Positions 7,619-64,000 of a stretch of DNA of 64,000 nucleotides are shown here, in pieces. The notes below the pieces were generated by a model that ran no database searches, was not told where the DNA came from, and saw nothing but the letters and a program-made list of their open reading frames with translations. Positions within the stretch are counted from its first letter, which is position 1. Every line of letters begins with the position of its first letter. The DNA comes from Azolla caroliniana (taxonomy: Eukaryota > Plantae > Polypodiophyta). A program made the translations under genes and the position numbers. The DNA lies in assembly GCA_043228905.1 (NCBI GenBank), contig JBHGNT010000012.1, forward strand, positions 12,214,001-12,278,000, given 5' to 3'.

Positions 7619-9930
7619 TGGTGAACCTGACGTGAAACTAGGTGGCAAGGAGAAGCAAAATCAACAAGAAGCGATGACCATGATGATCAACCGCATACTT
7701 CAAGAACTACAAGAACAATGTGTGATGTCGAAGACCAAATCGGCAGTAGAGCGGCTTGTGCTAAGAAACAAGCAATTCAACGGAAAGGATGTGTCACACT
7801 ATCTATGTGACTACAATGCAGCCATGATGCAATGTTGGATACCGGAAGGATTGCAAGTGATATCCTTCAATCGGGTGGCCATAGATGAGCTACAAGAGAG
7901 AGTCCAGAAGATATGGCAACAAACCCCGAAATGGGGGTCCTTTGAAGAAGCTTTACAAGAGGCATATGACTATGAGAGACCGAAGGGATGAGATTGACAC
8001 GAGTTTGACCAGTGGGTGGCATCGGCGAAGATCCACCAAAGCGCGACACAAACATTCCTAGAGTTAGAGCATCATTTTGCTCAACTCTCGGAGCTGGAAT
8101 GACGATTGGTGGGGGTGGATAAAGTCCTAATGTTCGTAAGATCGATCGATCGGAAAGAAAGGATGGACATCGGGATCCAACTTGAAGACGATTATGGTGC
8201 AAATGGTCTCACGGAGGATTGGGCCAAAGTCAAAAGTGCCAAAGACATCATAAGAGGAAAATGAGAATCTCGTTAGCAACAACGTGGTCCATGCGGGATG
8301 GTCGATTAAGGATGAATGATGTGGCTGATATGAAGACCGAAGTACAATACGAAGGTACCACGGTAGAGGGTGTGGAACAAGCTACCCTCTTGTCTTGCGA
8401 AAGAATGATGGCCAAGGATGAGACCGATGACTTGAGAGTGGAGAACACCACTTCAAGGGTGGAAGAAGGTTTCGGGACATGAGTGTCCAAAACATCGAGT
8501 GAAAAAGGGGAAGCATAATCGAAGATTCCATAATCAACGAGGGCCGAAAAGAGTGTGAAGCCTATGGAGTTGAAGAGATAGTCGCGGATAACGACATTGA
8601 GGTGAAAGTGGCTCAGGATTATTCAATGGAGGACTGTAATACCAAGGATTACTTCCCACTAATTCAAGAGACTTCAACAGTTCCATCTGAGAACCAACGT
8701 GAGACGGAAGAGGCGGAAGGTGGCGGAGAGGAAATGAAGGTTGAAACCGATGCATATGACGGAGAGATAGTCGAGAAAGTGGCTATGGAAGAGTCAATGG
8801 TAGATGTCCATATCAAGAGTTTCCCACCACTAATTCCAGAGACTCTAGCGGTTGTGTTTGAAAGGCAACGTGAGACCAAAGAGACGGAAGGTGGCGGAGA
8901 GAAACCGAAGGTCAAAGCCAATGCATACGATGGAGAGATAATCGAGAAGGTGACTATGGGCGAAACGACAGAGGACGGTTATATTGAGGATTCCTGCCCA
9001 TTTATTCTAGAGACTTCGGCGATTGTGTCTGAGAACCAACGTGAGACTGTAGAGACAAGAGGTGGCAACAAGGAATGTAAAGCTGGAAGTGGGTTCGGAC
9101 GAAACATGATATGGTCGGATTCCGGCCTAAACGAAAGTCATACCAAGCGGAAGTGGATTCGACCGAAATCTAATTTGTGAAGCCCGACTCGGACAGAAAT
9201 CATTCTAGTTGGAAGCCGATCGGACGAGACTCATCTAGAAAGAAGCTAATCTGGCTCAGCTGGAGGTCAAACCAGTTGAGGCTGATGAACACGAGGAAAA
9301 GGAACCCAACCCAAACCAAAACCGATTGGTTGAACCTGACCCAGAAGGGGGCTGACTCGGTTGAAACCGATCAACTGAGTTCGATTTGGCCGAATGCGAA
9401 TACGGATGGAAGCCGACCTAGCTGAAAGCCGATGAGACGAGATTGATATGGAAAGAAGCTAATTTGACTCAACCAGAGGTTGAAGAAATCGAGGCCGGTG
9501 AAAACGAGAAAGACGCCAAGAAGGCACACTACCATGGACGACAACGGCCGAGCAGATTTGAAGGGTGTTACCGAGGATGAGATCTCAACAAAGAAGGAGG
9601 GCTCTAACACGAAGATTGCCAACTCTAACGCGAGATTTTACGATGAAGTTGGACGAAGTGCGGAGTGTCTTGACCAAGGAGACAGTTGGAACAAAGGTGG
9701 CACATGAACGAGACATGAAGGGTTAAGCTCAGAAAGAGCACAACGAGAAATGAGAACCGGTTATGGCAATTCAAAGAGTGAACGAAGAATATGGTGGATC
9801 GGATGACGACAATGGTTCGGGTGGAAAAAATGGATGTGCTCAAAATGGAGAGACAAAGTCAACATAGCGAGAGAAACTAAGGATGCTAGGATGAAGGAGA
9901 GTAACAAGCATTGGCAACTTTGGCACACAT
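7619..9930 (+). mobile_element. Fragment of a tRNA-Trp-primed Ty3 element (PBS, decayed gag, acidic repeat region; no pol)
   Basis: PBS TGGTGAACCTGACGTGAA at 7619-7636. Gag AVERLVLRNKQFNGKDVSHYL is homologous to AVDRVVELESQFDGRNVTKFL at 55418. Confidence 0.75.
8640..9070 (+). repeat. ~171-bp (57-codon) tandem repeat, ~2.5 copies, encoding an acidic peptide
   Basis: PLIQETS...NQRETEEAEGGGEE / PLIPETL...RQRETKETEGGGEK / PFILETS...NQRETVETRGG within ORF 8602-9180. Confidence 0.8.
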
Positions 9931-12945: not shown

Positions 12946-15900
12946 ACACCATACTGTTACCATAGTTATCGGATCTCGAATCACATCTCATATGTCTAGA
13001 GGGCTAAAGACGTCAGATGCCTTCTTGGTAAAGTTCTTCCAATCAAAATTTGAAGCATTCATTTTGCTTGTGTATTTTCTGAACCTCCTTATTTATATTG
13101 CATACCCACAACTTGCATCATGGAACAAGTTTTGAACGTTGTTGGAGAAATCTCAATGACCGAGACCTCTCAACTCCAATCCGCATCTCGCACACAAGCT
13201 GAGATCACTATTGAGAAATTGCTCACTCTGGGTATGAGTGCTATGTGCAGAAACATGTATGGATCGATAGTCGGTATTGGACAGAAAACAACACATACAA
13301 AAAATAGAATAGACATGGAGACTTACACAGATGGAGCTTTAATGGGAAGCTTCTTATTACTTCGTTCTTTCTCAGAGATTCAATACTTTGCTCGACATCA
13401 CTCATTACAATGTTAGGTATTTGCTTATATACTAAGCCCTAACTTATTAACGAGTTCACACTTGGGCGGATACAATTTGGAAGGAGTCGGCCTTTTATGA
13501 CAACAAACTCCCCCGTAAAAGGACTACTCTTTCTTGCATGTACAAGTTCTTGGGGTTATCTCCCTCGTAAACCTAGATTACAAATTTAACTAGATCTTAT
13601 GTTACAAGTCTGTTGGCAAGTAGCTGAGTCTGTAGAGGTATAGTATGAGTGTCGGTCAGCTCTTAGCATCTACTCCTCGTTCGGGTTTCTTCTACTCATT
13701 GCTTGTCGTAGCCTCATCTTCGTCCTTAGTGTTCCGAAGCGTTGATCTAGGAGTGGCTTCGTCAGGCAATCGACAATCTTCACCTCGGTGTCGATCTTCC
13801 GGACTTCGAGTTTCTTCTCAGTCACGAGCTCCCGGATATGATGATACCGCACCTCAATGTGCTTCGTCTTTGCATGGTAGATGGGATTGTTGATGAGGTG
13901 TATTGCGCTCTGTGAGTCGGAGTAGATAGTCGGCATTGGTCGGTCTATTCGGTTTGCAGTTCTAAAGTCGGTAGTTAGTCGGTGCAACCAGATTGCTTCC
14001 TTCGCTGCTTCCGATGCTGCTACATACTCTGTGGTAAACAGAGTCGTGCACTCTTGAAGTTTTGACCTCCATGATATCGCACTGCCACCATAGGTGAAGA
14101 TGTAGCCTGATGTTGATTTCCGATTATCTACATTTCCGGCATAGTCGGAATCGGTGTAACCTTCGACTTCGGTTGAGGTTGTCAGTCTGAAAGTCAGTTG
14201 TGCATCCAGGGTTCCTTTTAGATACCTAAGGATGTGCTTGACAGTGTCCCAATGCTTCTTTCTTGGGTTTGACATGTACCAGCTAACCACCCCTACGACA
14301 TAGGCTAGGTTGGGTTAGGTTGCCAGCATTGCATACATGATACTTCCTACTGCCGATGAGTAGGGTATTTTTCCATTAAGTTCTCTCTCCTTGTCCGTTG
14401 CAGGAGAGTCTCTATTCGATAGTCTGATCGATGTCGGAAGCGGTGTCGGTGCTAGCTTCACATTCTCCATGTTGAAGCGCTTCAGCACCTTGCGGATGTA
14501 TTCGGACTGGGAGATTCAGAGAGTTTTGGTCATCCGATTTCCCTCTATCCTCATGCCCAGTATGTGTCGGGCTTGTCCGAGTTCCTTCATCACGAATTTT
14601 GCGTGAAGGCTCCACTTCAGCTTACCGATCTCTGCTTGATTTCTCCCTACAATCAACATATCGTCGACATATAGGATCAGATAGATCCTTGACTCGTCGG
14701 CTAGTTGCCGAACATACATGCATGGGTCGGAGTTTGATCTGTTGTATCCAAGTTACCGTATGTAGGAGTCAAAGTTCTGGTACCACATTCTCGGCACTTG
14801 TTTTAGGCCATATAGACTTTTCTTTAGTCGACATATGAGGTGACCGTACTCCCCCATCGTTGTGAAGCCTGCCGGTTGTAATATGTATATATCTTCTTCC
14901 AGATCTCCATGTAGGAATGTCGTCTTTACGTCCATCTGCTCGAGCTCTAGATCTTCTGTCGCCACGACTCCTAGTAGGAATCGGAGGGTGGTCATCTTTA
15001 CTACTAGTGAGAATATCTCGTCGTAGTCGGCCCCATATTCTTGTTTGAATCCTTTCACAACAAGCCGAGCTTTGTAATTGGGTTTCTCTGAGTCGGATAC
15101 CTATGTGTATCAGAACCACCCATTTGCAAGGTAGCGGCTTTCTTCCTGCTGGTAGTTCGACCAGCTCCCATGTCTGGTTCTGATGAAGTGAGTCCATTTC
15201 GGATTTCATGGCTTGCAGCCATGTTTCAGCGTCCGGTGGGGCCATAGCTTTGTCATACGTGATTGGTTCGCCTACATCCGTGTCGTTGACATAGTCGAGG
15301 CCCAGTTGATAAAACTCTGTTGGCCTTCGAGCTCGTCCAGATCTCCCGGGTGCCGTAATATCTGGTTCGGATCCTTCGATCGGTATTTCTTGAATCAGTT
15401 GTGTCAGGAGTTTTGTGAGGTGTCCCACCCCCGGTTTGGGATTTTGGCGGTGTCTGGTTTTCCTCCCTTGTGGTTGTCGTCGACTCTTTTCTAACTTGTC
15501 TCTTGGTGACTTTGCCTGTATCGATCCTTGTCGATTCGGCTGTGTCTTTGAAGACTTTGTCTTTGAGTTCGACGATAGGACTTGTTGCCGATTCAGTGTC
15601 AGCAGGGAAGTTGGCATCTTGTTGGAGTTCGACTATTTGCCGCGTCTCCGATTTGTCCCGGTTGGTCAGTCCTTCCATGATAGTGTTGTCATCTTCGAAG
15701 GATACCTTCTTACCAACTGTTTTCTGTCAGTTCCGCTGAGAGAAGATAGAGTCTTCATTGAAGACTACGTCACTACTCCGGATCAATTTCCGGTTCTCAG
15801 GGTACCATAGTTGGTAGCCGAAGTCCCCATCAATTCCATAACCGAGAAATATGCACTTTGTTGCATGGTGTGCCAACTTCGTCCTTGTGTCACAGGGGAT

Positions 15901-18900
15901 GAATGTGTAGGCTTCGCATCCGAATATACGGAGCCTATTGTAGGTCGGTTGTTTTCTTGACCATAGTTCTTGTGGCACTTCGATCCTGATTACTCTTGAC
16001 GGCACCAGATTTATCAGGTACACTGCCGTTTGCAATGTCTTGGCCCAGAATTCCAGCTTCAGTTCGGCTTGCTGGAGCATTGCTGTCACCCTCTCTTGGA
16101 TCGTTCGGTTGATCCTTTCAGCCACCCCATTCTGCATAGGTGTGTAGGGAATGGTCTTTTGCTGTCAAATCCCTTTTCCAGACAGGTACTCTTTGAAGGC
16201 TCTGGAGGTGTACTCACCTCCGTTGTTGGATCGGAGTGTCTTCACTCTATATCCCGACCGGTTCTCCACTTCAGATATCCATCGAGTGAAGACCTCGAGC
16301 ACTTCATCTTTGGACTTGATGGAGTATGCCCAAAATTTCCGTGTACAGTCATCTACGAATGTGATGAAGTACTAGGAGCCTCCTAGTGATCGCTCTAGCA
16401 TGGGCCCACATATGTCTGTGTGCACGAGCTCTAGGGGTTATCGTACCGTCTTGTAGGGGAGAGAGTGTGGACTTCGGGTCTATTTCCAATATAGACAATG
16501 CTCGCAGAAGTCCCTCTTCGCTTGGAGTTTCAGGATGTAGCCAACCGACATCAGCCGATCAAGTCTGGCTTGTGACATATGGCCAAGTCGACCATGCCAT
16601 AGGTTCGGTTCGGTCTTTTCGGCTACGTTCACAACCCCTTTAGGGTTGATCACCATCAATGGGTATAGATTATTATACTTGTGCCCACTACTGATTTTGA
16701 GGTTTCCTCGGCTGATCACCCACGTCAACTCGTGTAGAGTCCTTTGATACCCGTCTTCAGCTACCATGCCGATGGAGACTAGACTCCTCTTTAGATCGGG
16801 TACGTGCCAAACTCGGTGTAGGGTTATTGTGTTGCCATTTGGAAATCTGATCGAAACCTCCCCAGTTCCGGCTATCTTGCACTCCTGCCCGTTGCCTAGT
16901 CGGACTGTGCCGCTGGTGTCGGTTGAATAGTTTGAAAACCATTCGATGTTGGGGGTCACGTGAAATGTGGCACCATAGTCTAGTAGCCACGTATGTGCAG
17001 CTTCTACACTATAGAGGACTTCTCCGATCATCGAATCCTCTAGGGAGAGGATATCTCTAAATTGGGTGTCGGCAACATTGATCTAGTTGCCGACTGGAGA
17101 GTGGTCCGAGTCGGAACGTCCCCGATTCTGCTCGGATCGCCGACCAGTGTCTTTTCTTTTTATTGACCCCGTCGGAAACATTGTGGCCAGCTTTCTTGCA
17201 GTGTGTGCAGTACTCACTTGTTCGGCCCATTCTCCACTTCGATCGTTGTCGGTCACCCTTTGTTTTCGATCAACTGTAGCGTCGACCAGTTCTATCGGCT
17301 TGTTCTTTCGTTCGACTCTGTCGGTTGAACGACTCGGTCAAGTGATGGGCTTCTACCGACTCATCGATGGTTAGTCCAATCGATTTTCGCCTGATGTCTT
17401 GTGTGAGGACTTGGCCGGTTGTTTCGTCCAGATTTAGGATCAGTTGGTTATTGGCGTAAGTTGTACAGAATACCTCCCAACTCGCCAGCAAGCTCAATAG
17501 GAGGGCAAGGGCTCTCAGTTCTTCTTCGAAGTTGATCCCTTGTGACGAGAGCTCAGACAACACCCGACTGAAGGTGTTGATGTGGGAGGTTGCCGGATCA
17601 GTCTCTTTTATCTTCGTGTTGAACAATTATTTGACCTGTTGATTTCTAACCTGTTCTTTTCTTTCAGCTTCTTTTGGTGTTTGTTGCCGCCAAACAACAA
17701 TGATTCTGGTCGGGTACTAGTTGTGGGTACGAGTGCTATGTGTGGAAACGTGTATGGATCTGTAGTCGGTATTGGACAGTAAACAACACATACAGAAAAT
17801 AGAATAGACATAGAGACTTACACAGATGGAGCTTTAATGGAAAGCTTCTTATTACTTCGTTCTTTCTCAGAGATTCGATACTCTACTCATCATCACTCAT
17901 TACAATGTTAGGTATTTGCTTATATACTAAGCCCTAACTTATTAACGAGTTCAAACTCGGATGGATACAATTTGGAAGGAGTCTGCCTTTTATGCCAACA
18001 CTCATACTACCTTAAATCAATTGGCCGAAATGAGGCGGGCCAATATGGCATTGGAAAAGAAATTCCAAGAATTGACTATTGAGTCGAAGTAAGAAGGTGA
18101 GCCTTCTTTCGTAGTAACGTCATTCAAGGGAGATAAGAAAGAAAGAACTGAGGAGGCCATTAGCACTTGGATTGGTCGTTAGGAGTCTCACTTTGAGCTC
18201 CACCCCAAGCCCAATGCTGTAAAAATTGGTTACGTCGCTCGTGAGTTAGGTGGCCGAGTTGCTGCTTGGTGGTGCGGCCTAAGGACTGCAAAGAACTTAC
18301 CCACAACTTGGGAAGGTTTCGTTGTTGTTTTTAAGAAATAGTTTTTGCAGCCACCTTCTCAAACTGAACAAGCGCAACACTTGTTCACGTTGTCGAGTAA
18401 GCCATTTACCTCTCTTGAGGATTATGTGCATCATGCTTGGACCGAGATCCAAAAATTGGGACTTAGGGGTGAGAAATGGTTTGTTTCTTGCTTTTTGAAT
18501 GGTATTCCTAATGGGGATTACCATTAGATTGTCCATGACAAGAACCCCACAACTTTCGAGGAAGCCGTCAACATTGTACTTCGGTACCATAAGACTTCCA
18601 AGAAAGACCACAATAAACCCGAGTTCGCCAAAACTCTGAATGTCAAGTTCATTGGGAAATGTAAGCAATCCAATGACACCCTTGACCTCGACTCCAAGAA
18701 ACCGAACATCTTCTGTGCATATTGCAAGAAGCGGGGCCACACAAAGGATACTTGTCGTCGTCTTGAAAGGAAGTCAATGAACACCCCCCCCTCCTCAAGA
18801 CAAATCCAAGAGTCACACAGGTGAGTCTGTTGATGTTGTTGAAGTTCATATCAACCACTTAAGTTCATGTGAATGCACTTTTCCTTCACATTTACTTGGA

Positions 18901-29474: not shown

Positions 29475-32161
29475 ACGGCCGATTTCATCGAGTCCAGGTC
29501 CGGTGATGACTAGATCATCTACGTATAGTAGGATACAAACCGGACGGTGCGGACCTTGCCAGATGAATAGTGAAGATTCAGACTTTCAGGCCACAAACCC
29601 CATCTTACACAACTGGTGTGTGATTTTCGCATTCCAAGCTCGGGGGGCTTGCTTCAAACAATAAAGGGACTTTTTGAGTCGGCACACCGCCGACCTATTT
29701 AGGTTTGATTGAAAACCGGGGGGTTGGATCATATAGAGTGGTTCTTCAAGGTCACCTTGAAGAAATGCATTCTTCATGTCCATTTGGTGAAGTGCCATCC
29801 ACTTGCCGCAGCAACAGCCAGTACCACATGAACCGTCATCATCTTCGCTACCGGAACGAAGGTCTTGTCGTAGTCAATTTCGTGGGTTTGGAGTGTATCC
29901 CTTCGCCACTAACTGAGACTTGTACAGGTTGACCAAAACCGTCGGCATTGTATTTTACCTTGTACACCCACTTGCAACCGATCGATTTACATTGTTGAGT
30001 AGGGTTGACCAGGTCCCAAGTGTTGTTGGCATCGAGTGCCCACATTTCTTCTTCCATAGCAGCACGCCAATTTGTGTCTTTCGTTGCTTCTGCGTAGCTC
30101 TCTAGCTCACGCACTCCCACCACCTTGGTCATGTACGCATAATGATGTGCCATGTACTTATTCTATCCATACCGTTTTACGGGGTTCTTTTAGTGGGTTG
30201 ACCGGTGCAATTTTCCGTCAGTCGGTTTGAGGCCCTTCTTGGCCAGTTTGGACTTTGTTTTCGAACATCTTACCTCATTTAGTTTGTAGTTAGAATCACT
30301 CCGATCTGACTCTTCGCTACCAGTGTCGTATTCTAGCATCTTCTTCTTCCCCTTCTCTGTGCGCGTGAACCGTCTCCTCGGTTCCTTGCGTAGGAAGAGC
30401 ACGAAGAGTCTCCACCACTCACTAGATCTTCATCCGACTGGTCATTCCGACTCAGTCGCTCATTTGGCCCACTTAGCCGGAATGAGATCCGACTCTCATC
30501 TAGAGTACCGAATTCCCCATCTGCTACCTGAACCTCTCCGGGTTCACTAGCTTCATCCTCCGGAATCGGGACTTCGTCGGGAGTTGGAGTCGGTAGAGAG
30601 TACCATGATGCCGACTCATCAAACTCGACATCTCAACTTACTCAGGCCTATTTAGTCCGGGGGTTATAACACTTATAACCCTTCTGTTCATGCGAGTAGC
30701 CGACGAGGATGTACTTCTCCGACTTCGGATCTATATTCCTTCGATTCTCATCCGGTACATGCACATATGCTATGCTACCGAATATCCGAAGATGTCTCAA
30801 ATTCTGTCCAAAATACAGCTCATGTGCTGACACCTTATCTCCAATCCGGTTTTGGATGTAGATGGTCGTCCAGACCACCTCAACCCAGTAAAACCTGGGC
30901 ATGATCTTCTCCTCCAGCATTGCCCTTGCTGCATCGACAATCGACCGGTTCTTTCTCTCAGCCACACCGTTTTGTTCCGGTGTGCATCGATAGTTGAATT
31001 CTCTCTGAATTCCTTTTTGTTGCAAATAACTGTTGAATTGGCTGGAAAAATATTCTTTTCTACCATCCAACCGCAGACACTTGATCTTTCTTTCTATTTC
31101 CCTCTTGACCAAGATTTGTAGATTCCGGAAATTGTCGAAGACTTCACCTTTCCTCTCAATGAGGTAGATCCATGTGTGCCGGTTGTAGTCGTTGATGAAG
31201 GAGACGAAATACCGACTCTTGCGAAGACTAACGTTTTGTCCCGGTCCCCATACATCCAGCTGGATTAAGTCGAGCTTGTTACGGCTCCGATTTTGTTCAG
31301 TGCGAAATGGAAGCCGGTGTTGCTTCCCAAGTTGGCATGCTTCATATATTTGGGCCTTCCGGCCACTGAATTTCGGCAATTCGAGACCAACCTGTTTCTA
31401 TTGCAAGTCTTGAAGCTTCCGGTAGTTGACATGGCTGATCCACGTGTGCCAGAGATCGATCTCTGATTTTGTCTTTTGTCCTTTGGCAAACAAGGCAATG
31501 CCGACGTCATTGGTGTCGAGGATGAACATCCTCCCGTCTATGCACCCTTGCGTAATTATCCGGTCTCCTTCCTCGATGAAGCACCCGAGGTGCGTAAACC
31601 ACACCTGTTGTCCCTGGTCGACGATTTGTTCGACCGACACTAGGTTCTTTGTGATTGTCGGAATATGTAGTACGTTTATCAACTTTCCCTTTTGTCCAAC
31701 ATGGCATAAGGGGACTTCTCCAACATGCACAATCAGGTGAGGGGTGTCGTTGTTATACTCTTAGCCGGACAAGGCCTAACACAAGGTGTCACGGAGACAC
31801 TTCACCAAAGGGTGATTACGGCATAGGATTAAGATTCAACGATCACACCGACTTACGTAGGTTACACGATTAGATTGCTTGGTTAATTACACGCGTAAGA
31901 TATAACAATGATTACAGAACGGAAATCAAGACAGAAGTATAAACACCATAATCTCCATTAATTATCCGCTGTGATTACAATAGGGTCCGGGCCTTTAAAT
32001 AGGTTTCCGGCCCGTAGTACAAAACGGTGTCTCTCGCACCTATTCGGGATCCGTCCGGATCTGGAACGGCATACCGTTTCCAGTCCGTCCGTCCACACTA
32101 TGCTCATTTACAACCATCTAATTAATTCCGTATTTTGGACTCCTTGCCGGCCGGTAACACA

Positions 32162-32195
32162 TGGCACGCCCGTGGGACAGTACCTTGTACGTCGA
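32162..32195 (-). promoter_or_regulatory. tRNA-3'-end-like motif at the PPT position of element A
   Basis: Element sense reads TCGACGTACAAGGTACTGTCCCACGGGCGTGCCA, 2 nt before the 3' LTR. Same motif at 61721-61754 and 44736-44770. Confidence 0.85.
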
Positions 32196-32211
32196 ACCCT
32201 TCTCGGCCCCT

Positions 32212-33057
32212 TCATTGTTCACCCAAATTGTCCAAAATACTTGGTTCAAGAATTTCCGCTTGTTCTTTCGGTTGTGGTTGTTGCGGCTGTGCTTGCTGCT
32301 GCTGCTGTGATTGCGGTTGTGACTGAGGTTGCTCCGGCTGCTCTGCTTGCTGCTGCTGCTCCATTTGTTTTGCTGACTCCGGCTGCTCCGTTTGTCTCTC
32401 TGACTCCGGCATCTCCGTTTGACTGCTTCCGGTCCGGTCTCCTTCCAGTAACGGTTCCTCATCACTGAGGTTGACCGTAACTGGTTCTCGTTCTTTCTCT
32501 CCCCGGATCCGGGACCTCTCGTAGCTTTCAAACTGGATCTGCGCCTCCAGCCTGTCGTCGTCCAGCTGAGCTACAAGTTGCCGGACTTGCTCTAATTGGT
32601 CTTCTGCCAAGGCTTGAAAGTCTTCGGCCAGCTCATCTCTTATGCCGGTGAAGTCTTCGGAAGTCAGCATATAGCAATCATCTCCCTCCTTCCGCCGGTT
32701 CTCTACGTCAGCCCGGAGCAATTGGAGTTCCGCCGCGTTTGTGGCCCACTTGGTCCACCATTTGACGGAGCCGTTGTCAATCAAGCTCTTGGTCTGGTTC
32801 AACCAGGCCCGCATTATATCCTGGATGCGACTTGCTCCCATCTGTGCTCTGCTTTCCACCACTTGTCGCTCCTCCTTCAACTGCTTGATGAGGTTTGCCG
32901 TATCCTCCGCCTGCTCTCGGTAGCGCGTCAGCTGCCCTTGATATGTCGTTTGCAGCCTCTGCAGTACCTCTGCCGCTCTTTCTTTTTCCGCCTGCTGTTG
33001 CCTGAGGAGCTCTGTCCGAACCTTCTCCGCCTCTTCCAACCGTCTTCTGTTTTCCAC
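32212..33057 (-). CDS. C-terminal part of a coiled-coil extra ORF (281 aa, Gln-rich tail)
   Basis: Open frame. WLNQ...WWTKWATNAAELQLLRADVENRRKEG matches WLNQ...WNDWSAEAAELQILRINAENHKKEG at ~45360-45480 (minus). Start codon uncertain (GTG). Confidence 0.7.
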   Translation of the reverse strand: MENRRRLEEAEKVRTELLRQQQAEKERAAEVLQRLQTTYQGQLTRYREQAEDTANLIKQLKEERQVVESRAQMGASRIQDIMRAWLNQTKSLIDNGSVKWWTKWATNAAELQLLRADVENRRKEGDDCYMLTSEDFTGIRDELAEDFQALAEDQLEQVRQLVAQLDDDRLEAQIQFESYERSRIRGEKEREPVTVNLSDEEPLLEGDRTGSSQTEMPESERQTEQPESAKQMEQQQQAEQPEQPQSQPQSQQQQQAQPQQPQPKEQAEILEPSILDNLGEQ

Positions 33058-34967
33058 TCTTTGGCCATGCCTTTCGACCGTGTGGTTACTTGCTGTACAT
33101 CCGTCACTTCCGGAACCACCATATTAACTGCTGGTCGTTTCTCGTAGCTCTTTACCGGGCACTGGTTACTGTAGTGGCCTTCCTGCCTGCAGTAGTAGCA
33201 GTACTCTTTACGGGTATTGCTGGATTCAGCATTGCTGGTAGCCGGAGTTGGTCCCGTAGCGAGTGGTGCGTTCTGTGCCGGTTGGCTCCTTGGGATTCCA
33301 TGTTCCGGGTCCCTAGGGTGACCACCTTTCTTGAAGTTTCGTTTCTTATTATTCTTATGTTTATTTCGGTAGTCCGGCCGTGGTGGATCGTAACATCGGC
33401 CGTAGTCCTCCTGGTGCCTTCGGTAACCAGGGGAATGGTCTCTATCGTATTGCTCATGTCGCCTGTTGGGCTCCCGATAACGGTCCGATCGCTCATACCG
33501 GTCGTAGTTATCACGCCGATTCCCGTACCGGCCATCATTCTCTTGCCTGTCTCCGTACCGGACATCTTGTGCCGGTGGGTACCGGTTCCCTCTTTGCCAA
33601 CGATCGTCATCTTCGTCTCGGCTGCTTCTTGGCTCGATCCGTCGGACGGGTGGTGCTTGTCGATTTAACAGGTTGTACTCGCACCGGTCCGTTGTATGAC
33701 TCTTGGATTGACAAATCACACACTGAGTGCGCATGGTGCACTCTACTGCTGAGTGTCCGGCATTCAAGCAGATTGTGCATTGAATTGCCTGCCGGAACCG
33801 GAGATCTTCCTCGGTGGGTAACGCCCGTTGCAGTGTTCCCAGCGTAAGCCATGAGCTTGTCTTTTCCATTTCTCTGACCCGATCAATGACCTGATCGATG
33901 GTGCATCCTCGAAAGTCGATCACCGTACACACCGTGCGTAACGGTTCCCGGAGTGCGTTTAAAAATATCGTCCGTAATTCCTCCTCCGGGGGTGCACGGG
34001 CAAGCTGGCTATGCATTCGTTGGAAACGGATGACGAATTGGGGAATGCTTTCCCCTGCCTCCTGCCGGATCGTATAAAACAGCCCCACCATTGTCGTCTG
34101 GTCGACCTCCTTGTGGAAAAAATGCAAGAATTTTGCTTTTAATTCTGCAAATGTTGTGATGGTCGCCGGGTCCTGCGACCGCCGCCATCGTGTCGCTGGT
34201 CCCTCCAACGTGACTCCGAATTCCGCTATCTTCGAGCGTTCTTCTTCCTCCGGTGTCATTCGCTGGGACGTGTGATTTGCTTCCCATGTCTGCTCGAAGT
34301 CATCCACATGCGCTTCCGCATCCGGATCATCGCGGTACTTTGAGTATTGGAACGGCATGTCGTCGTCCAGTATTAAGCCGCGGTTTAGTGGCGCTTGTTG
34401 ATATCTTTCCGGTTCTTTCTCCGGTTTCACTTCCGGTTCTTTTGCCGGTCCTTTTTCCGGTTCTTTTTCCGATACCTTTGCCGGGAAGTTCGTTGGTGTT
34501 GGTGGCTTTGCTTCTTCCACTTCCGGTGTTGGTGGGTTGACGGCTTCCGTTTGCGGTTCCGGATAGCCCTGGTTGAGCGGTTCCGGTTCTGGAGTCGGCA
34601 CGGTATCCGACCCGTCGTCTTCCGGGCCGCCGGGGGTATCGTTGCTGCTCCGGTAGTTCGTGTGCACGCTGTATCCCCCTTCGGAATCCGATTCGTAGGC
34701 TGAAAAGGCTTCTGCCTCGTTTTCTCCGCTTGCCAGCGCCTCCAGGAGTCGTTCGGTTTCCCGGAGACTACTTAGACTGCTTCCGTCGACCTGGTTGCGA
34801 GTTTGCCGTAACCGGAGAGATTCCTCCGCGACTCTCCGGATCTCGTTGGAGAACGAACGATCCGAGCGAATTTCCTGCGCTGCTTGCTGGAAAGTCTCAC
34901 GCCGTCTTTGCCGTTCGGCGATGCGTCGAGCTCGGTTTGTAACCAAGTCGTGCGTTGGTCTAGTCAT
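32928..34967 (-). CDS. gag: Intact Gag-like protein (679 aa) with capsid-like region and three CCHC zinc knuckles
   Basis: Open ORF: EFGVTLEGPATRW...LKAKFL...IRQEAGESIPQFVIRF; knuckles CTICLNAGHSAVEC, CVICQSKSHTTDRC and CYYCRQEGHYSNQC. Homologous to the decayed gag at 48108-49654. Confidence 0.9.
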   Translation of the reverse strand: MTRPTHDLVTNRARRIAERQRRRETFQQAAQEIRSDRSFSNEIRRVAEESLRLRQTRNQVDGSSLSSLRETERLLEALASGENEAEAFSAYESDSEGGYSVHTNYRSSNDTPGGPEDDGSDTVPTPEPEPLNQGYPEPQTEAVNPPTPEVEEAKPPTPTNFPAKVSEKEPEKGPAKEPEVKPEKEPERYQQAPLNRGLILDDDMPFQYSKYRDDPDAEAHVDDFEQTWEANHTSQRMTPEEEERSKIAEFGVTLEGPATRWRRSQDPATITTFAELKAKFLHFFHKEVDQTTMVGLFYTIRQEAGESIPQFVIRFQRMHSQLARAPPEEELRTIFLNALREPLRTVCTVIDFRGCTIDQVIDRVREMEKTSSWLTLGTLQRALPTEEDLRFRQAIQCTICLNAGHSAVECTMRTQCVICQSKSHTTDRCEYNLLNRQAPPVRRIEPRSSRDEDDDRWQRGNRYPPAQDVRYGDRQENDGRYGNRRDNYDRYERSDRYREPNRRHEQYDRDHSPGYRRHQEDYGRCYDPPRPDYRNKHKNNKKRNFKKGGHPRDPEHGIPRSQPAQNAPLATGPTPATSNAESSNTRKEYCYYCRQEGHYSNQCPVKSYEKRPAVNMVVPEVTDVQQVTTRSKGMAKEWKTEDGWKRRRRFGQSSSGNSRRKKKERQRYCRGCKRHIKGS

Positions 34968-35002
34968 CCATTACCGTCGTTCGCTGCGAGTAAGCAGGAA
35001 TC

Positions 35003-35012
35003 GTGGTCGCCA
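35003..35012 (-). promoter_or_regulatory. PBS of element A (TGGCGACCAC, tRNA-Arg type)
   Basis: Lies 6 nt downstream of the 5' LTR and upstream of gag. Complementary to a plant tRNA-Arg 3' end (...GUGGUCGCCA, recalled). Confidence 0.75.
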
Positions 35013-36135
35013 AAACTGTGTTATACTCTTAGCCGGACAAGGCCTAACACAAGGTGTCACGGAGACACTTCACCAAAGGGTGATTACGGCATAGGATTAA
35101 GATTCAACGATCACACCGACTTACGTAGGTTACACGATTAGATTGCTTGGTTAATTACACGCGTAAGATATAACAATGATTACAGAACGGAAATCAAGAC
35201 AGAAGTATAAACACCATAATCTCCATTAATTATCCGCTGTGATTACAATAGGGTCCGGGCCTTTAAATAGGTTTCCGGCCCGTAGTACAAAACGGTGTCT
35301 CTCGCACCTATTCGGGATCCGTCCGGATCTGGAACGGCATACCGTTTCCAGTCCGTCCGTCCACACTATGCTCATTTACAACCATCTAATTAATTCCGTA
35401 TTTTGGACTCCTTGCCGGCCGGTAACAGTCGTCTCCAGTTTCGACGATTCCCAGTTGTTCCAGTTTCTCCAAAAACGAGAACCACCCTTCGTGGCTCGTC
35501 ATGTGGTTTCATGCGCCGGAATCAACATAGCATACTTCCTCCGATTTGGAAGTAGTCTTCTTCATCGAGTTACCCTTGTGCTCCATCACAAAGGTTGGTT
35601 GCCCCTTTCCAGTTTTCCCGGTTCCGAATCCTTCCGATCCTTCTGCGTAGTGCGAATATGTAGTCCGAATCGGTGCGCTTCTTCCAACACTCGCTTTCTC
35701 TGTGGCCTTTCTTGCCACAATACCAGCATTCCGTGTCGGCCTTCCCTTGTCAGTTTCCGGTGTCGTTTTGACTAACCCTGCTCCTAGAGGGTCCGGAACT
35801 ATTGTCGGCACTATCGCGGTGCCTTCGATTCTTCTCTTGTCGGCTGCCTCCATTGCATGCCAACCCACCTCATCCTCCACGCCCATGTGGCCTTACCGCC
35901 TCCGTGTAGAACATCCGGTGGTTCGGTTGAGTGGTCCTCGACCCACTCACGTGATTTTCTTCGACCATCAGCATCAATTGCAGGTCGAAGAAGGATGGTG
36001 GCTTCTCCCGGGCGCAGATAGATGTCCAGATTGGCCTGTACCCTTACGATCATGACCATATAATATCCCATGGCCAGAATTTACCGTAGTATTCTATACA
36101 CATGGATAAGTGTGAGGGTTAAACAAGAGTGTAAA

Positions 36136-36935
36136 TGTCGGGAACTCAACGCTCCTTATGTCCAACGCTCGGCCACAACCGAGATTCTTTTCGTACACAG
36201 AAAAACGGGAAACAAATGCACGACACAAAGGAGAGAAAATACATAGGAGGTTTACGTGGAAAAACCCCAAACTAGGGGAAAAAACCACGGCAGCCCACAT
36301 GCTGCAAATTGTCACTATGTAAGAATGTACAAACAGTGAGTTCACGGAGGCAACGACCTCGTGCTCACGATCTTCGCCACAGGCGGCGGTTACAACAGAG
36401 GCAACGACCTCGTTCTCTCTCTCTCTCTCTGTACAGTTACGCACACTGATCTCGTGCAAAACAGAAAATGACAACAACTAAAAGTTTGCCCTAAGTCATA
36501 TTTATACTAATATGACTTTTCGGCTATTTACAAATATAGCCTCGATGAACTCTCAGAAAACATATTTACGAATATGTCTCTTCATCCAGTTCATATCGGG
36601 TCTGCACCATCCGGCTCTCCGTAGCCGAGTACTCCTCATCCAGTCTTCACCGGGTCTGTATCATCCGGCTATCCGTAGCCAGGTACTCCTCATCCGGTCT
36701 TCACCGGGTCTGCATCATCCGGCTCTCCGAGCCGGGTACTCCTCATCCGATCTTCACCGGGTCTGTATCATCCGGCTCTCCGTAGCCGGGTACTCCTCAT
36801 CCGGTCTTCACCGGGTCTGTATCATCCGGCTCTCCGTAGCCGGGTCCTCCTCATACGGTTTCGGCCTCGGCCGAGTTTGTTCATCGGCACTGTTCTTCTC
36901 CCTTCCCATCCGGAGGGACCTATCATCCGGAGGGA
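36136..36935 (-). mobile_element. LTR (same family as 50932-51639) inserted into a chromovirus LTR remnant (36044-36135, resuming ~36936)
   Basis: Extensive similarity to 50932-51639. The flanks correspond to near-consecutive parts of the chromovirus LTR. Confidence 0.78.
36582..36852. repeat. 54-bp CCGG-rich tandem repeat, 5 copies, inside the LTR
   Basis: Unit TCATCCGGTCTTCACCGGGTCTGTATCATCCGGCTCTCCGTAGCCGGGTACTCC. Confidence 0.9.
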
Positions 36936-42189: not shown

Positions 42190-43735
42190 TATCATTCCTA
42201 ATGTAAGCATGAAATAAGGAAATATGAGATGGTAGATAAGAGAAAGAGAGAGCAAGAAAGGTGTTGATCCACCCGACCACCCCCGAGCGAAGGGACCGAG
42301 ATAGACTCGAGCCATGATCGACATCCCATTCCACTGCCATGGCATCGATTCATACCTGATACTAGCGCTCTCGACAAAAGATCATAGTCTCAACATAGCT
42401 AAACCCTTCCCTTAATGAGGGTAGCTAGCCCTCATATTTATAGCCAACCTAAGGCCCCTAAGCAAGTTCATACTTGGCCCTTATGGCATCGATTCATACC
42501 TGATACTAGCGCTCTCGACAAAAGATCATAGTCTCAACATAGCTAAACCCTTCCCTTAATGAGGGTAGCTAGCCCTCATATTTATAGCCAACCTATGGCC
42601 CCTAAGCAAGTTCATACTTGACCCTTATGGGTTGTCTCAATTCCTATGATTAAAAGTAAACCTCCCTTCTTTACAGTCTCGACTAACTCTCACACTTTAT
42701 CCTCGTCTGTAGAATACTAAAGTATAACTAACCACGAGATAAATTAGGGTCATGCCCCGAACATACTCCCCCCTCTTTAAAACATTGCACTCTTGCAATG
42801 AAAAGTTAGGGAAGATAGTTTGTATAGTTTTTTCTCGTTCCCATGTAGCATCTTTTAGAGATTTATCCATCCATTTAGTTTTAAATTTTTGAATTGTCCT
42901 AGAATGCAATTGTTTTTGTTTTAACATCAAGAATTTTCTCTAGTACATATAGTTTAGAAGCTAAATCTTTAGAAGTAGCAAGAGTTTTAGTTGTAACTGT
43001 ATTGTCACTAGAACTAAGAAATTCTTTTAAACGACTTACATGAAAAACTGGATGGATTTCGACACCATCAGGAAGAACGAGATGATAGGTTGATGAACTA
43101 AGGAATTTGAGGATTGTGAAAGGTTCACAAAACCACGAGGCTAACTTAGCATACTTACTCGTAGAAAACGTTTTGGAATTGTGAGGTACAAACAGAAATA
43201 CCTCTTGTCTAGGTTTGAATACATGAGGTTGCCTATTTTGGTCAACATAAAAATGAGCTCTATCTTGAGTTGTTTAAGATTATATCTCGTGCAATATGCA
43301 ACATATCTTGCATATCCCTTAGAATGTTTTGCATACTTCGCAACTCATCGTGATATATATTAACATCAATTGGGGCTCGAGATTGAAAGTCATACATAAA
43401 AGGACTATATCGAGATTGAAAGCCAATTTAGGAGCTATTATTGTAGTTTTAGTAACAATAAACGTGGTCATTTTAGTTAGTCTATCAACTACAACCCAGA
43501 TGGCATCATGGCCTTTTTGGGTGCAAGGAAGGCTCACAATAAAATCCATGGATATACTTTCCCATTTATTGTTGGGAATATCCAAGGGATGTAAAAGTCT
43601 AATGGCTTTAAGTCAGTCAACTTTGTTAACTTGTCATTAATGACATTTAGTCACATAATTATGTATGTTAGAATGCATCTTAGGCCAATAAAATTGAGTG
43701 GAGATGAGAACAAGTGTGCGATGTGAGTGAAAGGA
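42190..43735 (-). mobile_element. Chromovirus 3' fragment: integrase/chromodomain, PPT and LTR (42190-42763) with an internal ~145-bp duplication
   Basis: [18 protein letters not shown]...ATWE, AAAGAGGGGGGAG-TA-TGTTCGGGGCATGACC. 42339-42483 is repeated at 42484-42628. Confidence 0.88.
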
Positions 43736-44295: not shown

Positions 44296-47100
44296 TGTCA
44301 AGAAATCGTGGTGCGTAGGAGACTCAGGGGAACGTCATACTATCGATCATTTATAGAGAATAAGACTAATACATTGCGGAATCGACAACAACCAATTCGT
44401 ATATTCGTCTTTCCACAGACCGAACGTTATATAGATATGTGTAGAGAGATGAGAGAGAGACGGAAGTTACCGCAAAGCATATATTATGTATATTCGATTG
44501 AATGTAGCATATAGATACATATACAAGTACCGAGTATAATCGGTGAACACTCACTCACTCTCTAATTAGTCTATCCCTATTCGTAATCTCTTTGATCCTT
44601 CCGCGCTCACCGATATATATATCTTCCTTCTGCTCGACACTTTCTACCTACTCCTTGATGTTCGGCTTCTCTTATTCGGCTGTTAGTGCTTGGCTCCCTT
44701 TGGTTCGTTTCACACTTGTCCCATTGGATAACACCTAGCACGCTTGTGGGACACTGCCTTGCATGTCAGATTCACAAAAAATCGAAAAACTCGAAGGTCC
44801 CAAAAAATAAAAAAATCAAACAAATTCTAATATAGTTCACTCCTCCAAAATGAGTAAAATGCTTGCCAACTGTTGCGAGTCGTCGAGTTTGTCAATGACT
44901 TCGGTCGAGAGTTCGGCCCAAATATTTGGCTTCGTAGGTGTGGCTTGCGTCTCTCTTATTTCTTCCTCCGTAGTGGTTTGTTGGACTAGTTCGTGAGGTG
45001 CATGCTCTTGGTTAGTAGGCCGATGATCCGAATCCTCATGCTCCTGCTCCTGTGCCTGTTCTTGGCATATCGAATCTTGTTTATCTGCTCCTCGGGTGCC
45101 CATGTTACCCCTTGCTTATGCATGCTTTCGGGGGAAGCTTCGTCTTTTCCTTGCGTTGGGGCCACCGTGTCCATCTTGGCCTAGAGTTGCTCACGTTCGA
45201 ATTTATCCATGTCAATGGTGAGTAGGAGTTGATCATTGGTGAATTCCTCAAGGCGGGTCCCAATAGCAGTGGTATGCATCTGTGCCATGGCATGGAACTC
45301 TACAGTGAAGTCCTCTCGGAGCACCTGGATGTTGTTCTTGTCCATTTGAAAAAAACCGCAGCCCTCCTTTTTGTGATTTTCTGCATTTATTCGGAGAATT
45401 TGTAATTCGGCCGCTTCTGCCGACCAGTCATTCCACCCCTAAGCCTGTGCATCTTTGACCTTCTGGTTCAGCCACTCATGATGTTTTCATACTAAAGCCT
45501 TGACTCATTCTTTGCCCATATCATATTTGTTATGGAGTATTTGTAACTCTTTTGTGGCAGTCAGGATGTCAAGTTCGAGCTTTGCTTTAGTGATGTTGAG
45601 TGAGGGTTTAGGGTCTTGCTCGTATTTGGGATGAGCCTGACCTTGTCCTCTTCAACCTCTAGGTCTTGTTGTGTTGTTTTTTGAAGCTCTTGGAGGGAAT
45701 CTTCTAATGCACTCTTTTCACTCTCCATCTTGCAAAGCAACTAATGTTGTAGACCGAAGTCTGACTGGAGATTCAAGAGGGGCTTCATTTGGATTACGGA
45801 GCGCCAACTAGTATCTTTCTTCCAATTTCTGCATCTCGACAACCGATTCGTCGTTGGCGGCCTGAAGAGTTGTCGTGGCCTTTGCTTTCAATTCTTGGAG
45901 GGTGCGATTAAATTCCTTTGTCTCGGAGTCAAGTATTTATTTTAGTTCAATTTCTCTCTTCTGTGCTTGATAGAGGGTTTTGCGGATGCAGTTGATTTCC
46001 TCCATGGCCTCGTGGTAGCATTGTTTGGATTGCTCGGCAATCGCCTTTTGGGTTTCCAATTCATCTTCGAAGTTTGGTGGTGACATCGATGATGTGGTAG
46101 TGGGGAGGGGTATTTCGTGGTCGGTGGTTGTAGCCGAGGGGCGGATTTCCTCGACCTGGTTTCCGTTCGCCTGATTGGTGTTTGGAGTCGGCAAGGTGAG
46201 AAGGTCGACTTGACCTAAGCCTCCTATTTCCTAAAGTTTTCGTTTGAGCTCCACCACTCGGGCTTCCGCAGCCTGCTAGAGCTCCGTTGTCTGTTTAGCT
46301 TGCTTGCATGCCTGTTTACTGTATGAAGCCATATCTTTGGCCGCGCGGGTCGTTTTGTCCAAATTTTGGTATACTTCTACTAGGGCCTTGTTTAACTCAA
46401 GCAGTGCGATGAGCAAGTGGTTGCTCCCCTTCTGATGCTTTCGGTAGATTTTCTGCAGAGGCGCCTCTTCATCGGATTCGAGTTCTCCAGTGATAGTCCT
46501 TTGGACCATCACTCTATCTGCGTGCTCTTCAGCCATGTTTGCCACAGACGCTACTTGTAATCGAGTGAAGAAATCGATGAGCTCATAGGAAGTGTCATGC
46601 CGCAAAATGTCATTGAGCTCAAAAGCCTCGGCTGGTAGGTCAGGAAAGGTCATCACGGCATCTTCTGAGATCTGGAAGGCCTGGCCCTTCTTCAAATTCC
46701 TTGGCAAGGACTGGGTCGTGTCTGGGAGGGCGACCACCATTTTTGTCAGGTGCCACAACCATATGCAATTCATCCTTCTTGGTTCAGACCCTCTTGTTGA
46801 GAGAGCATGCTCAACTTGGGTCGGAACGGCTGAAGAAGACGAGAACCGGATCGGATTGGACTGGTCAATTTGGCCAGGATCGGTTGAAGAAGCCGGGAGC
46901 CAAATTGGATGGAGACTGATTGGCGAGGCCGGATCGGTGGGATCTGGAAGGGCATTGGAAAGATATTTTGTGAGGGAATATGTTTGGGAGTTAGTGTAGG
47001 GGATCACTTCTGAGCATTCAAGTACTAACGGTACTTGTGTCAGTCCTTTTAAGGACTTGTATAAAAACTGCTCTCTAAGCACATTCGATGTACAGAGTGT
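44296..47100 (-). mobile_element. Element E: 3' end of a decayed member of the element A family (extra ORF, tRNA-like motif, 3' LTR ~44296-44733)
   Basis: Coiled-coil ORF remnants at 44837-47082 are homologous to element A ORF2. Motif TCTGACATGCAAGGCAGTGTCCCACAAGCGTGCTA lies 2 nt before TGTTATCC. The left LTR boundary is tentative. Confidence 0.75.
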
Positions 47101-63300: not shown

Positions 63301-64000
63301 CTTGCCAAGTACATTCCAACATACGTCATTGTGATGAGCTACGATCGACATACCCGCTCACCATACACTTCAAATGGATGGTTGATCTGGTCTCAATGCC
63401 AATGGGAGTGGGAAAAATGAAGTACTTAGTGCTGGCAAGAGAAGACTTGACAAATCAAGTGGAAGGGCGGGCTTTGACAAATAAGACAATGTCATCTGTT
63501 TGCAAATTTCTACTTGAAGAGGTTGTCTGCCGATACATATGTGTGGGGAAGATAGTTGCCGACCGAGGGGAGTTGGTCGCACACGAAGCAACAGAGCTTT
63601 TCGAACGACTAGGCGTGAAGCTCTCCCTCACGACTGCCTACAATCCAAAAGCGAATGGGAAGATTGAACGAGGACATGGACCCATCGTCAAAGCCATCGT
63701 ATGAGCATGCAACAGTCGAGTCGGGAATTGGCCACGACTATTGCCCTACGCCTTGTGGGCTGACAGAATGACATACAACTCGGTGACAGGGTATATGCCA
63801 ACATAGCTTATGTATGTACAAAAGCCGGTGATGCCCATCGAAAGGATGATCGCCTCATGGGTAGCGATACCATGGGAGAACGAGATGAGCCGAGAAGAAT
63901 TATTAGCGGCACGGATAAGGCAACTTGAAAGGACACCTAAAGATCTAGAACATGCGCGAAAAATGATGGAGGCAGCCCGAGTGAAGAATAAAATTCGGTT
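54344..64000 (+). mobile_element. Element D: tRNA-Trp-primed Ty3/Gypsy element (5' LTR 54344-55356, gag, PR, RT, RNase H, INT), continuing beyond the window
   Basis: LTR TGTCGTGAAG...CTTCACGATA; PBS TGGTGAACCCGACGTGAA at 55365-55382; protease ALIDHGSEIN; RT LPQGATNSV/FLDDIPMKG; RNase H IVDTSPT; integrase GHRG, VADRGE, AYNPKANGKIERGH. Confidence 0.92.
58755..62222 (+). mobile_element. Element B: non-coding (LARD-like) LTR element, LTRs 58755-59199 and 61760-62222
   Basis: LTR pair with some substitutions and indels; TSD AAAGT at 58750-58754 and 62223-62227 restores host KPSPSK|VNAIQ; PBS TGGCAACCAC at 59205-59214; tRNA-like motif at 61721-61754; purine-rich interior with no recognisable domain. 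Confidence 0.93.

Follow-up and report, generated by a model that had tools for sequence, protein, structure and literature searches.

Introduction

Retrotransposons that have long terminal repeats (LTRs), and retroviruses, convert their RNA into DNA with the help of two primers, a tRNA annealed at the primer-binding site (PBS) for the minus strand and a polypurine tract (PPT), which resists RNase H, for the plus strand. To our knowledge, PPT priming of the plus strand is regarded as universal among retroviruses, LTR retrotransposons and pararetroviruses. Variants of the minus-strand primer are familiar, including the self-priming of Tf1/Sushi elements and the half-tRNA priming of copia and Ty5, and all of these, as far as we know, retain a PPT for the plus strand. 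CCA-ended tRNA-like structures (TLSs) serve as replication tags in the Mauriceville retroplasmid and in plant RNA viruses. A bipartite 5'-3' PBS has been described for Ty3, in which the 3' segment is located within U3 and complements the T and D arms of the primer tRNA, while the PPT is kept (Gabus et al., 1998; reviewed in PMC5371799). In this study, we analysed a 64,000-nt stretch of Azolla caroliniana DNA (GCA_043228905.1, contig JBHGNT010000012.1, positions 12,214,001 to 12,278,000), hereafter the window, in which an LTR retrotransposon derivative, element A, and a non-coding LTR element, element B, carry what reads as a sense copy of the 3' end of tRNA-Arg(UCU) at the place where a PPT would be expected. 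This copy, together with a hairpin inserted into it, is called the module. Its relatives, its conservation and its relation to the 5' PBS are described, and its probable role in plus-strand initiation is discussed.

Results

A copy of a tRNA 3' end adjoins the 3' LTR

On the sense strand of element A, GGGTTCGACGTACAAGGTACTGTCCCACGGGCGTGCCA-tg stands immediately upstream of the 3' LTR (Table 1), and purine runs within these last 30 nt reach 4 at most. The tail of the module was compared with a tRNA-Arg(UCU) gene (L220:1581-1653) and with dozens of eukaryotic tRNA-Arg(TCT) genes found by a metagenome scan for tRNA 3' ends; these genes end in GTGGGTTCGAGTCCCAC[C/T]GGGCGTG, followed by T-rich terminators. 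The element A tail matches tRNA-Arg(UCU) plus CCA at 17 of 18 positions, one C being missing from CCCAC-C-GGG, and the final 11 nt (CGGGCGTGCCA) are exact. A preliminary description of the window had proposed a match to the plant tRNA-Arg(UCU) 3' end with one gap, and these genes bear it out. The motif is a sense copy of the tRNA 3' end and hence is PBS-like on minus-strand DNA, as that description had also read it. A scan of viral contigs for the same tail returned about 120 matches, nearly all of them chance matches in phage DNA, and one real tRNA-Arg(TCT), L091.

The description recognized the tRNA tail correctly but gave its length too short, as the tRNA-derived part exceeds 17 nt and includes a T-loop remnant separated from the tail by an inserted hairpin. 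The remnant GGGTTCGA matches GTGGGTTCGA of the tRNA-Arg(TCT) genes, with 0-1 change in B, L128, L130 and L171 (L numbers denote the loci retrieved). The module is a 3'-strand fragment of a tRNA and not a tRNA-like fold. ARAGORN detected 0 tRNAs in the window, and Rfam gave no match at the gathering score and, at E<=10, only a spurious tmRNA match over the module. Among seven A-type copies, the tail columns are near-invariant, the invariant columns of the alignment concentrate in the tail, and two stem pairs of the hairpin change on both sides (UA/GC and GC/AU); 91.8% of the cells are paired, compared with 34-47% when the partner column is slid, and RNAalifold independently predicts the same hairpin. 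Between element A and L128 the flanks are approximately 60-70% identical with indels, and the 45-nt module has one mismatch. The module is a conserved island in diverged flanks.

Element A is a clean, recent insertion into another element, because its two 409-bp LTRs are identical (409/409), the target-site duplication (TSD) GTCGT is intact and Copia-type pol matches lie in its flanks, Pol_BBD and gag_pre-integrase at one end of it and a DSGA protease motif at the opposite end. The architecture of element A, with identical LTRs and a clean TSD inside Copia pol, is therefore competent for transposition. Two other readings were rejected. A nested or inverted arrangement is ruled out, the LTRs of element A being direct, identical and TSD-flanked; a purine-rich stretch 35-55 nt upstream (GAAGGGG..GAGAAGGG in element A) cannot define U3, because the LTR begins 40 nt further on. 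The positions and sequences of the elements and motifs given in the preliminary description, the lack of a PPT before the 3' LTR of element A and its recent transposition all stood, as did the retention of the motif in element B and a decayed copy in a third element, E (44776-44736, minus strand).

The module is kept across a clade of autonomous elements

Relatives were found by gag and pol searches plus contig look-ups. In four of them (L002, L128, L122 and L123) the domains RVT_1, RT_RNaseH, Integrase_H2C2 and rve follow one another in this order, and no chromodomain is recorded. Five autonomous relatives, L001, L128, L122, L123 and L129, carry the module and have no PPT. L128 has the same PBS and module as element A. 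L001 combines an A-type module, CGAGCGTGCCA-tg, with a PBS for tRNA-Arg(UCU); in L122 the hairpin is another one and the tail reads CTCCACCAGGTGTGCCA-ag; and L123 and L129 show a 26-nt uninterrupted tRNA-like stretch, GATTGAGTGCCCAGCCGGGTGTGCCA-gg, with no insert. The spacer from CCA to the LTR is nG (tg, cg, gg, ag, gg) in A, E, L001, L128, L130, L171, L122, L123 and L129, so the spacing is fixed among the carriers compared except in B, where it is 5 nt (tattg). Its mirror image is the ACA-Cn found at the inner edge of the opposite LTR. Within the last 30 nt, purine runs extend to no more than 3-4 in A, B, L001, L122 and L123, compared with 11 and 17 in the controls L124 and L126, which have ordinary PPTs: L126 reads AAAAAAAGGGAGAAGAA and then TGTTGAC, and L124, from Riccia sorocarpa, GAGAAAAGGGGCA and then TGTGAT. 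In the window itself, where the preliminary description had reported PPTs for other families, the one case examined, the small-element LTR pair at 13229-13505 and 17724-18000 (92% identical), has a G-rich PPT, GGGGGAG-tt-TGTTG, on the minus strand; this element is without a TGG-type PBS and may be self-priming. The LTR of the L123-type element at L129 contains a long (CT)n microsatellite (L129:6080-6186).

In a quick maximum-likelihood tree of pol (IQ-TREE), all carriers fall into one clade (SH-aLRT 100) with L126 in the sister group, and L127, L124, Marchantia elements and angiosperm elements lie outside. Branches within the carrier clade measure 0.3-0.7 changes per site, and the closest named relatives in the pol search are liverwort elements (43-47% identity). 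By this tree, the carriers are monophyletic and make up a clade of non-chromoviral Ty3/gypsy elements of plants at the bryophyte grade, and the simplest reading is that the PPT was replaced once and that the replacement was then kept through substantial divergence. The 3' end is not readable in L125 (the contig stops in pol), L250 (decayed, no LTR pair) and L002. The LTR start of L127 could not be fixed; this element has a tRNA-Asp-like PBS and purine runs.

In principle, the module could be what remains of an inverted 5' LTR-PBS rearrangement, or could stem from copy-choice onto a packaged tRNA, and could hitchhike without present function or have no other part than that of a decoy in the silencing by tRNA fragments. 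That it resembles an extended PBS on the opposite strand does point to an origin of this kind. A conserved island in diverged flanks and a covarying hairpin are nevertheless difficult to reconcile with loss of function, as is the retention of the module in B, a non-coding parasite, and across a clade with pol branches of the length given above. A sense RNA would be unable to pair with 3' tRNA fragments, and something must prime at this place, since there is no PPT. We therefore consider a purely passive module very improbable.

The tRNA and the 5' primer-binding sites

The tRNA gene in L220 derives from the ENA series ERZ10343xx, which also holds the element A relatives L001, L002 and L128. 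DNA contigs of four runs, three of the window organism and one of a second organism, were aligned to L220:1541-1661. The number of tRNA-Arg(UCU)-like contigs was 112-319 per run over the four runs, with 17-69 at least 99% alike, and 112-252 per run over the three host runs, with 17-48 at >=99%. A matching tRNA is thus present both as a gene in a sister sample series and as hundreds of copies in the runs of the host itself and, because of the many copies in host contigs, the host tRNA-Arg(UCU) can be taken to have the L220-type sequence. The matching contigs span tRNA positions ~6-14 to the 3' end and most then read CCA-AAAG-TGT; on the opposite strand this is an LTR end, cttt and a PBS complementing nearly the whole tRNA. 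No contig in the four runs spans the tRNA gene plus its own upstream flank, so that copies and not the chromosomal gene were seen. Extended PBSs complementary to tRNA-Arg(UCU) also occur at L171:201-235 (35 nt) and, at near full length, at L130:1188-1265 and in several copies in L224. These long 5' PBSs look like the product of read-through copying of the primer tRNA past A58, with a stop near positions 9-14, that was then inherited. In L224:1-2055, at least four tandem units of an LTR, about 10 nt and a near-full tRNA-Arg copy are found; the 10-nt piece (GGACACAAGG on the other strand) directly adjoins the LTR and resembles the 5' half of the module hairpin. Unequal crossing-over could have produced the array, as could aberrant strand transfer, or it may be an artefact of the assembly (coverage ~6x).

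The 5' PBS varies among the carriers (TGGCGACCACGA, TGGCACGCC, TGGCGACTCCGC and TGGCGATCCTGC). It starts with TGG in all elements and matches tRNA-Arg(UCU) in L001, L002, L171 and L130. The PBSs of A, L122, L123 and L125 we presumptively take to be of Arg type, following the lead of the HERV9 PBS. ARAGORN, run on all loci retrieved, yielded no tRNA fitting these four, and the host tRNA for the PBS of A, B and L128 (TGGCGACCACGA) was not recovered. The first 12 nt of the element A PBS are those of the HERV9 PBS discussed in PMC4724089. A REXdb survey lists tRNA-Arg among non-chromovirus PBSs and holds nothing on a tRNA-end copy in place of a PPT.

These PBSs bear on a possible contact at the RNA level, in which the module would pair either to the 5' PBS or to those 5' strands of the acceptor and T stems that become free in the annealed primer tRNA, and aid strand transfer by a Ty3-like 5'-3' contact, the plus strand being primed from another, unrecognised site. 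L001, L130 and L171 have a PBS for the same tRNA-Arg(UCU), so that their PBS and module are complementary, and the bipartite PBS of Ty3 offers a precedent (PMC5371799). The PBSs of A, L128, B, L122 and L123, however, point to other tRNAs and share only TGGC with the module complement. The PBS varies while the module persists, and PBS-module pairing is therefore not the conserved role of the module; as a conserved function, 5'-3' RNA pairing is ruled out by the lack of complementarity in these five elements. Such a contact would moreover leave the fixed CCA-nG-LTR spacing unexplained and the U3 boundary without a primer, and we regard it as unlikely. Nor is the module a bipartite PBS of the Ty3 type, the tRNA implied by the element A PBS differing from the tRNA copied in its module.

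The two sites also differ in how faithfully they follow a tRNA. At the 5' PBS the match is perfect and often extends very far, as though copied afresh from the primer, whereas the 3' module has degenerated except over its last 14-17 nt. This asymmetry fits a 3' site that is inherited only by templating, whether the plus strand is primed by a tRNA or by RNA of the element itself.

Plus-strand initiation

With no PPT and a sharp U3 boundary, something must prime at the position of the module. Because priming is needed there and pairing with the PBS is not its conserved role, we conclude that the module is very probably the plus-strand initiation signal. The retroviral primer has its 3' end 2 nt from U3, and two bases are removed by integrase; the CCA end of the carriers is located where the primer of a plus strand has to end and, by analogy, their spacing is the geometry that would be expected if the primer 3' OH were the A of CCA and integrase trimmed two bases.

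A sense copy of the tRNA-Arg(UCU) 3' end, CCA included, stands in the place of the PPT, and we infer that the tRNA itself may be the primer, a proposal for and against which we see the evidence as evenly balanced. Equally finely poised is the wider proposal that both strands have tRNA primers, an Arg isoacceptor at the 5' PBS and tRNA-Arg(UCU) at an inverted second PBS. Minus-strand synthesis would pass U3 and RNase H would clear the template, after which the minus strand would expose TGGCACGCCCGTGGGAC as a primer-binding site, the upstream hairpin keeping the 14-nt landing site single-stranded. tRNA-Arg(UCU) in the particle would anneal via its last 11 to 17 nt and would be extended by reverse transcriptase into nG-U3-R-U5-PBS; the tRNA would then be removed by RNase H, in the same way as the minus-strand primer, and the 2-nt overhang trimmed by integrase. 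With a tRNA supplied in trans, the enzymes would not have to acquire a new specificity, and priming would function as soon as an inverted PBS had arisen by rearrangement. The duplexes predicted between the tRNA 3' end and the minus-strand site have energies of -27.6 to -36.5 kcal/mol (RNA parameters applied to an RNA:DNA hybrid), compared with -28.6 and -29.2 for the real PBSs of L001 and L002, -15.6 +/- 3.3 for shuffled sequences and -4.6 and -10.3 for the PPT controls.

Several points weigh against the tRNA as the primer. No module is identical to the tRNA: one C is missing from the A type, L001 shows G>A, and in L122, L123 and L129 a C>T at -7 would produce an rC:dA mismatch, barring a variant tRNA in the hosts of these three. 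Since the primer cannot renew the module, part of the module's resemblance to the tRNA is simply descent, and the duplex-energy argument is therefore partly circular. The PBS of element A points to another tRNA, and two tRNA species would thus be needed in the particle. L128 reads CTA and L171 TCA in place of CCA, although these may be dead copies. The comparison covers 10 module copies only, several from low-coverage assemblies. The part played by the tRNA is thus suggested by sequence, and a primer made from element RNA fits nearly as well.

Such a primer would arise in cis if RNase H cut the element RNA after CCA, the hybrid mimicking a tRNA on its PBS with no tRNA annealing; the enzyme would draw on its existing specificity for the removal of the primer tRNA. 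Such a primer would explain equally well where the module lies, its CCA-nG spacing, why the tail is conserved, the lack of a PPT and the independence of the 5' PBS. It would fit better the 1-nt deletion and the tRNA mismatches in L001, L122, L123 and L129, and A-type particles would not have to contain two tRNA species. Lying 14 nt upstream, the hairpin could stall reverse transcriptase and so help to place the cut. On the other hand, RNase H would need to cleave a strand made entirely of RNA at a non-purine site and afterwards leave the primer intact, for which we know of no precedent in any reverse transcriptase. A one-step exchange of the PPT for an inverted PBS would work immediately only with a tRNA in trans, and complementarity to the tRNA over 15-17 nt is kept even in the divergent L122 and L123 types. 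We consider priming in cis possible but rather doubtful.

Elements A, B and E in the window

The features are collected in Table 1. Searches with the gag protein of element A gave only unnamed ENA proteins, 64-71% identical. Its extra open reading frame (ORF) has no Pfam match; an ILD..L..E motif at the C-terminus recurs upstream of the module in L001, L128 and L130. Extra ORFs of approximately 600-1100 amino acids (aa) without a Pfam hit lie 3' of pol in relatives with a module (L122:7720-11893 and L123:9986-12034) as well as in others (L126:5595-8927 and L127:15706-19110), so that these large post-pol ORFs accompany both module and PPT; the 281-aa ORF of element A is the tail of an ORF of this type. 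With LTRs, PBS and plus-strand signal kept and pol lost, element A has the make-up of a TR-GAG.

Table 1. Positions of elements A, B and E and of their parts in the window
Feature	Position	Strand	Remarks
Element A	31751-35427	minus	LTR retrotransposon derivative: gag, extra ORF, without pol
Element A 5' LTR (coding orientation)	35019-35427	minus	TG..CA ends; TSD GTCGT at 35428-35432
Element A 3' LTR	31751-32159	minus	TSD GTCGT at 31746-31750
Element A 5' PBS, TGGCGACCACGATTCC	34997-35012	minus	cagttt (6 nt) separates LTR and PBS
Element A gag ORF, 679 aa	32928-34967	minus	Pfam Retrotrans_gag 6.4e-09, zf-CCHC 2.5e-06
Element A extra ORF, 281 aa, coiled-coil-like	32212-33057	minus	Stops just upstream of module
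T-loop remnant, GGGTTCGA	32192-32199	minus	tRNA positions ~51-58; 5' T-stem and T-loop up to A58
Hairpin, GAC-GTAC-AAG-GTAC-t-GTC	32176-32193	minus	13-nt core inserted directly after A58
tRNA-Arg(UCU) 3' tail copy, GTCCCACGGGCGTGCCA	32162-32178	minus	Last 18 nt including CCA, minus one C
Element A spacer tg, CCA to LTR	32160-32161	minus	2 nt
Copia-type pol parts flanking element A	31398-31730 and 35509-35886	minus	
Element B, non-coding LTR element	58755-62222	plus	TSD AAAGT; LTRs 93.5% identical
Element B PBS, TGGCAACCAC	59205-59214	plus	ctttt between LTR and PBS
Element B module, GTGGGATCGACGTGCAAGGCACTCTCCCACGGGCGTGCCA	61715-61754	plus	17-nt motif 61738-61754, then 5-nt spacer tattg, then LTR
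Element E decayed module, GTGAATCTGA..GTCCCACAAGCGTGCTA-gg	44734-44776	minus	LTR start at 44733

The LTR of element B is unrelated to that of element A, and nothing but the module and a similar PBS is common to the two elements. The sole ORF of element B, of 227 aa, runs on the opposite strand, and none is of gag or pol type; coding capacity is thus lost while LTRs, PBS and plus-strand signal are kept, as in elements of the LARD/TRIM type. Element B sits within a Gypsy RT-RNaseH-integrase ORF (58600-58754 / 62223-63704), of which a 492-aa ORF picks up directly past the TSD. Telomere-like CCCTAACCCTAAA repeats lie at the 3' end of its LTR (59176-59192 and 62198-62214). The degenerate 17-nt motif of element E (44752-44736, minus strand) is followed by gg-TGTTATCC, and no partner (5') LTR was found for it within the window. 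The 15-mer core of the motif occurs three times in the window with <=3 mismatches, compared with 0.61 expected; none of 100 shuffles reaches three. Tandem repeats at 8593-9105, 36578-36859 and 42339-42626, with periods of ~171, 54 and 144 nt, lie in or beside other elements.

Discussion

A recently active clade with autonomous members that has no PPT and a tRNA-end copy instead shows that the plus-strand primer is exchangeable in evolution, and the clade offers a natural system for what reverse transcriptase and RNase H need at the plus-strand start. If the tRNA is indeed the primer, these would be the first retroelements with both strands tRNA-primed; the packaging of the primer (all of the PBSs look Arg-type) would be tied to both halves of replication, and the PPT and its specific processing by RNase H would be dispensable. 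Annotation tools that score a PPT will misjudge these families, and the near-full tRNA copies at the 5' PBS of the relatives explain the large tRNA-Arg-like population in the genome. In a full-text literature search, with subscription journals outside its coverage, no tRNA-end copy or inverted PBS replacing a PPT was found described.

With canonical LTR elements and retroviruses the carriers share TG..CA LTRs, a 5-bp TSD, a PBS of apparent tRNA type after the 5' LTR, gag and, in the relatives, the order reverse transcriptase-RNase H-integrase; as in retroviruses, the 3' end of the primer site lies 2 nt from U3. They differ in having no purine tract but a CCA-ended sense tRNA copy adjoining U3, which would form a second PBS on the minus strand. 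Ty3 likewise has tRNA-related sequence at the 3' end of a Ty3/gypsy genome besides the 5' PBS; the module, however, shares the sense of the tRNA, is situated upstream of U3 with CCA at its end, and occupies the position of the PPT. Tf1/Sushi elements and copia/Ty5 are precedents for LTR elements changing their primer, but for the minus strand only. As in the Mauriceville retroplasmid and the viral TLSs, a tRNA-derived CCA-ended sequence would mark the start of a polymerase; those are full folds at the extreme 3' end of the template, whereas the module is internal and retains only the 3' strand of the T and acceptor arms. Finally, elements A and B resemble TR-GAG and TRIM/LARD elements in keeping the cis signals of autonomous relatives such as L128, and differ from them in that the 3' cis signal retained is the tRNA-end module and not a PPT.

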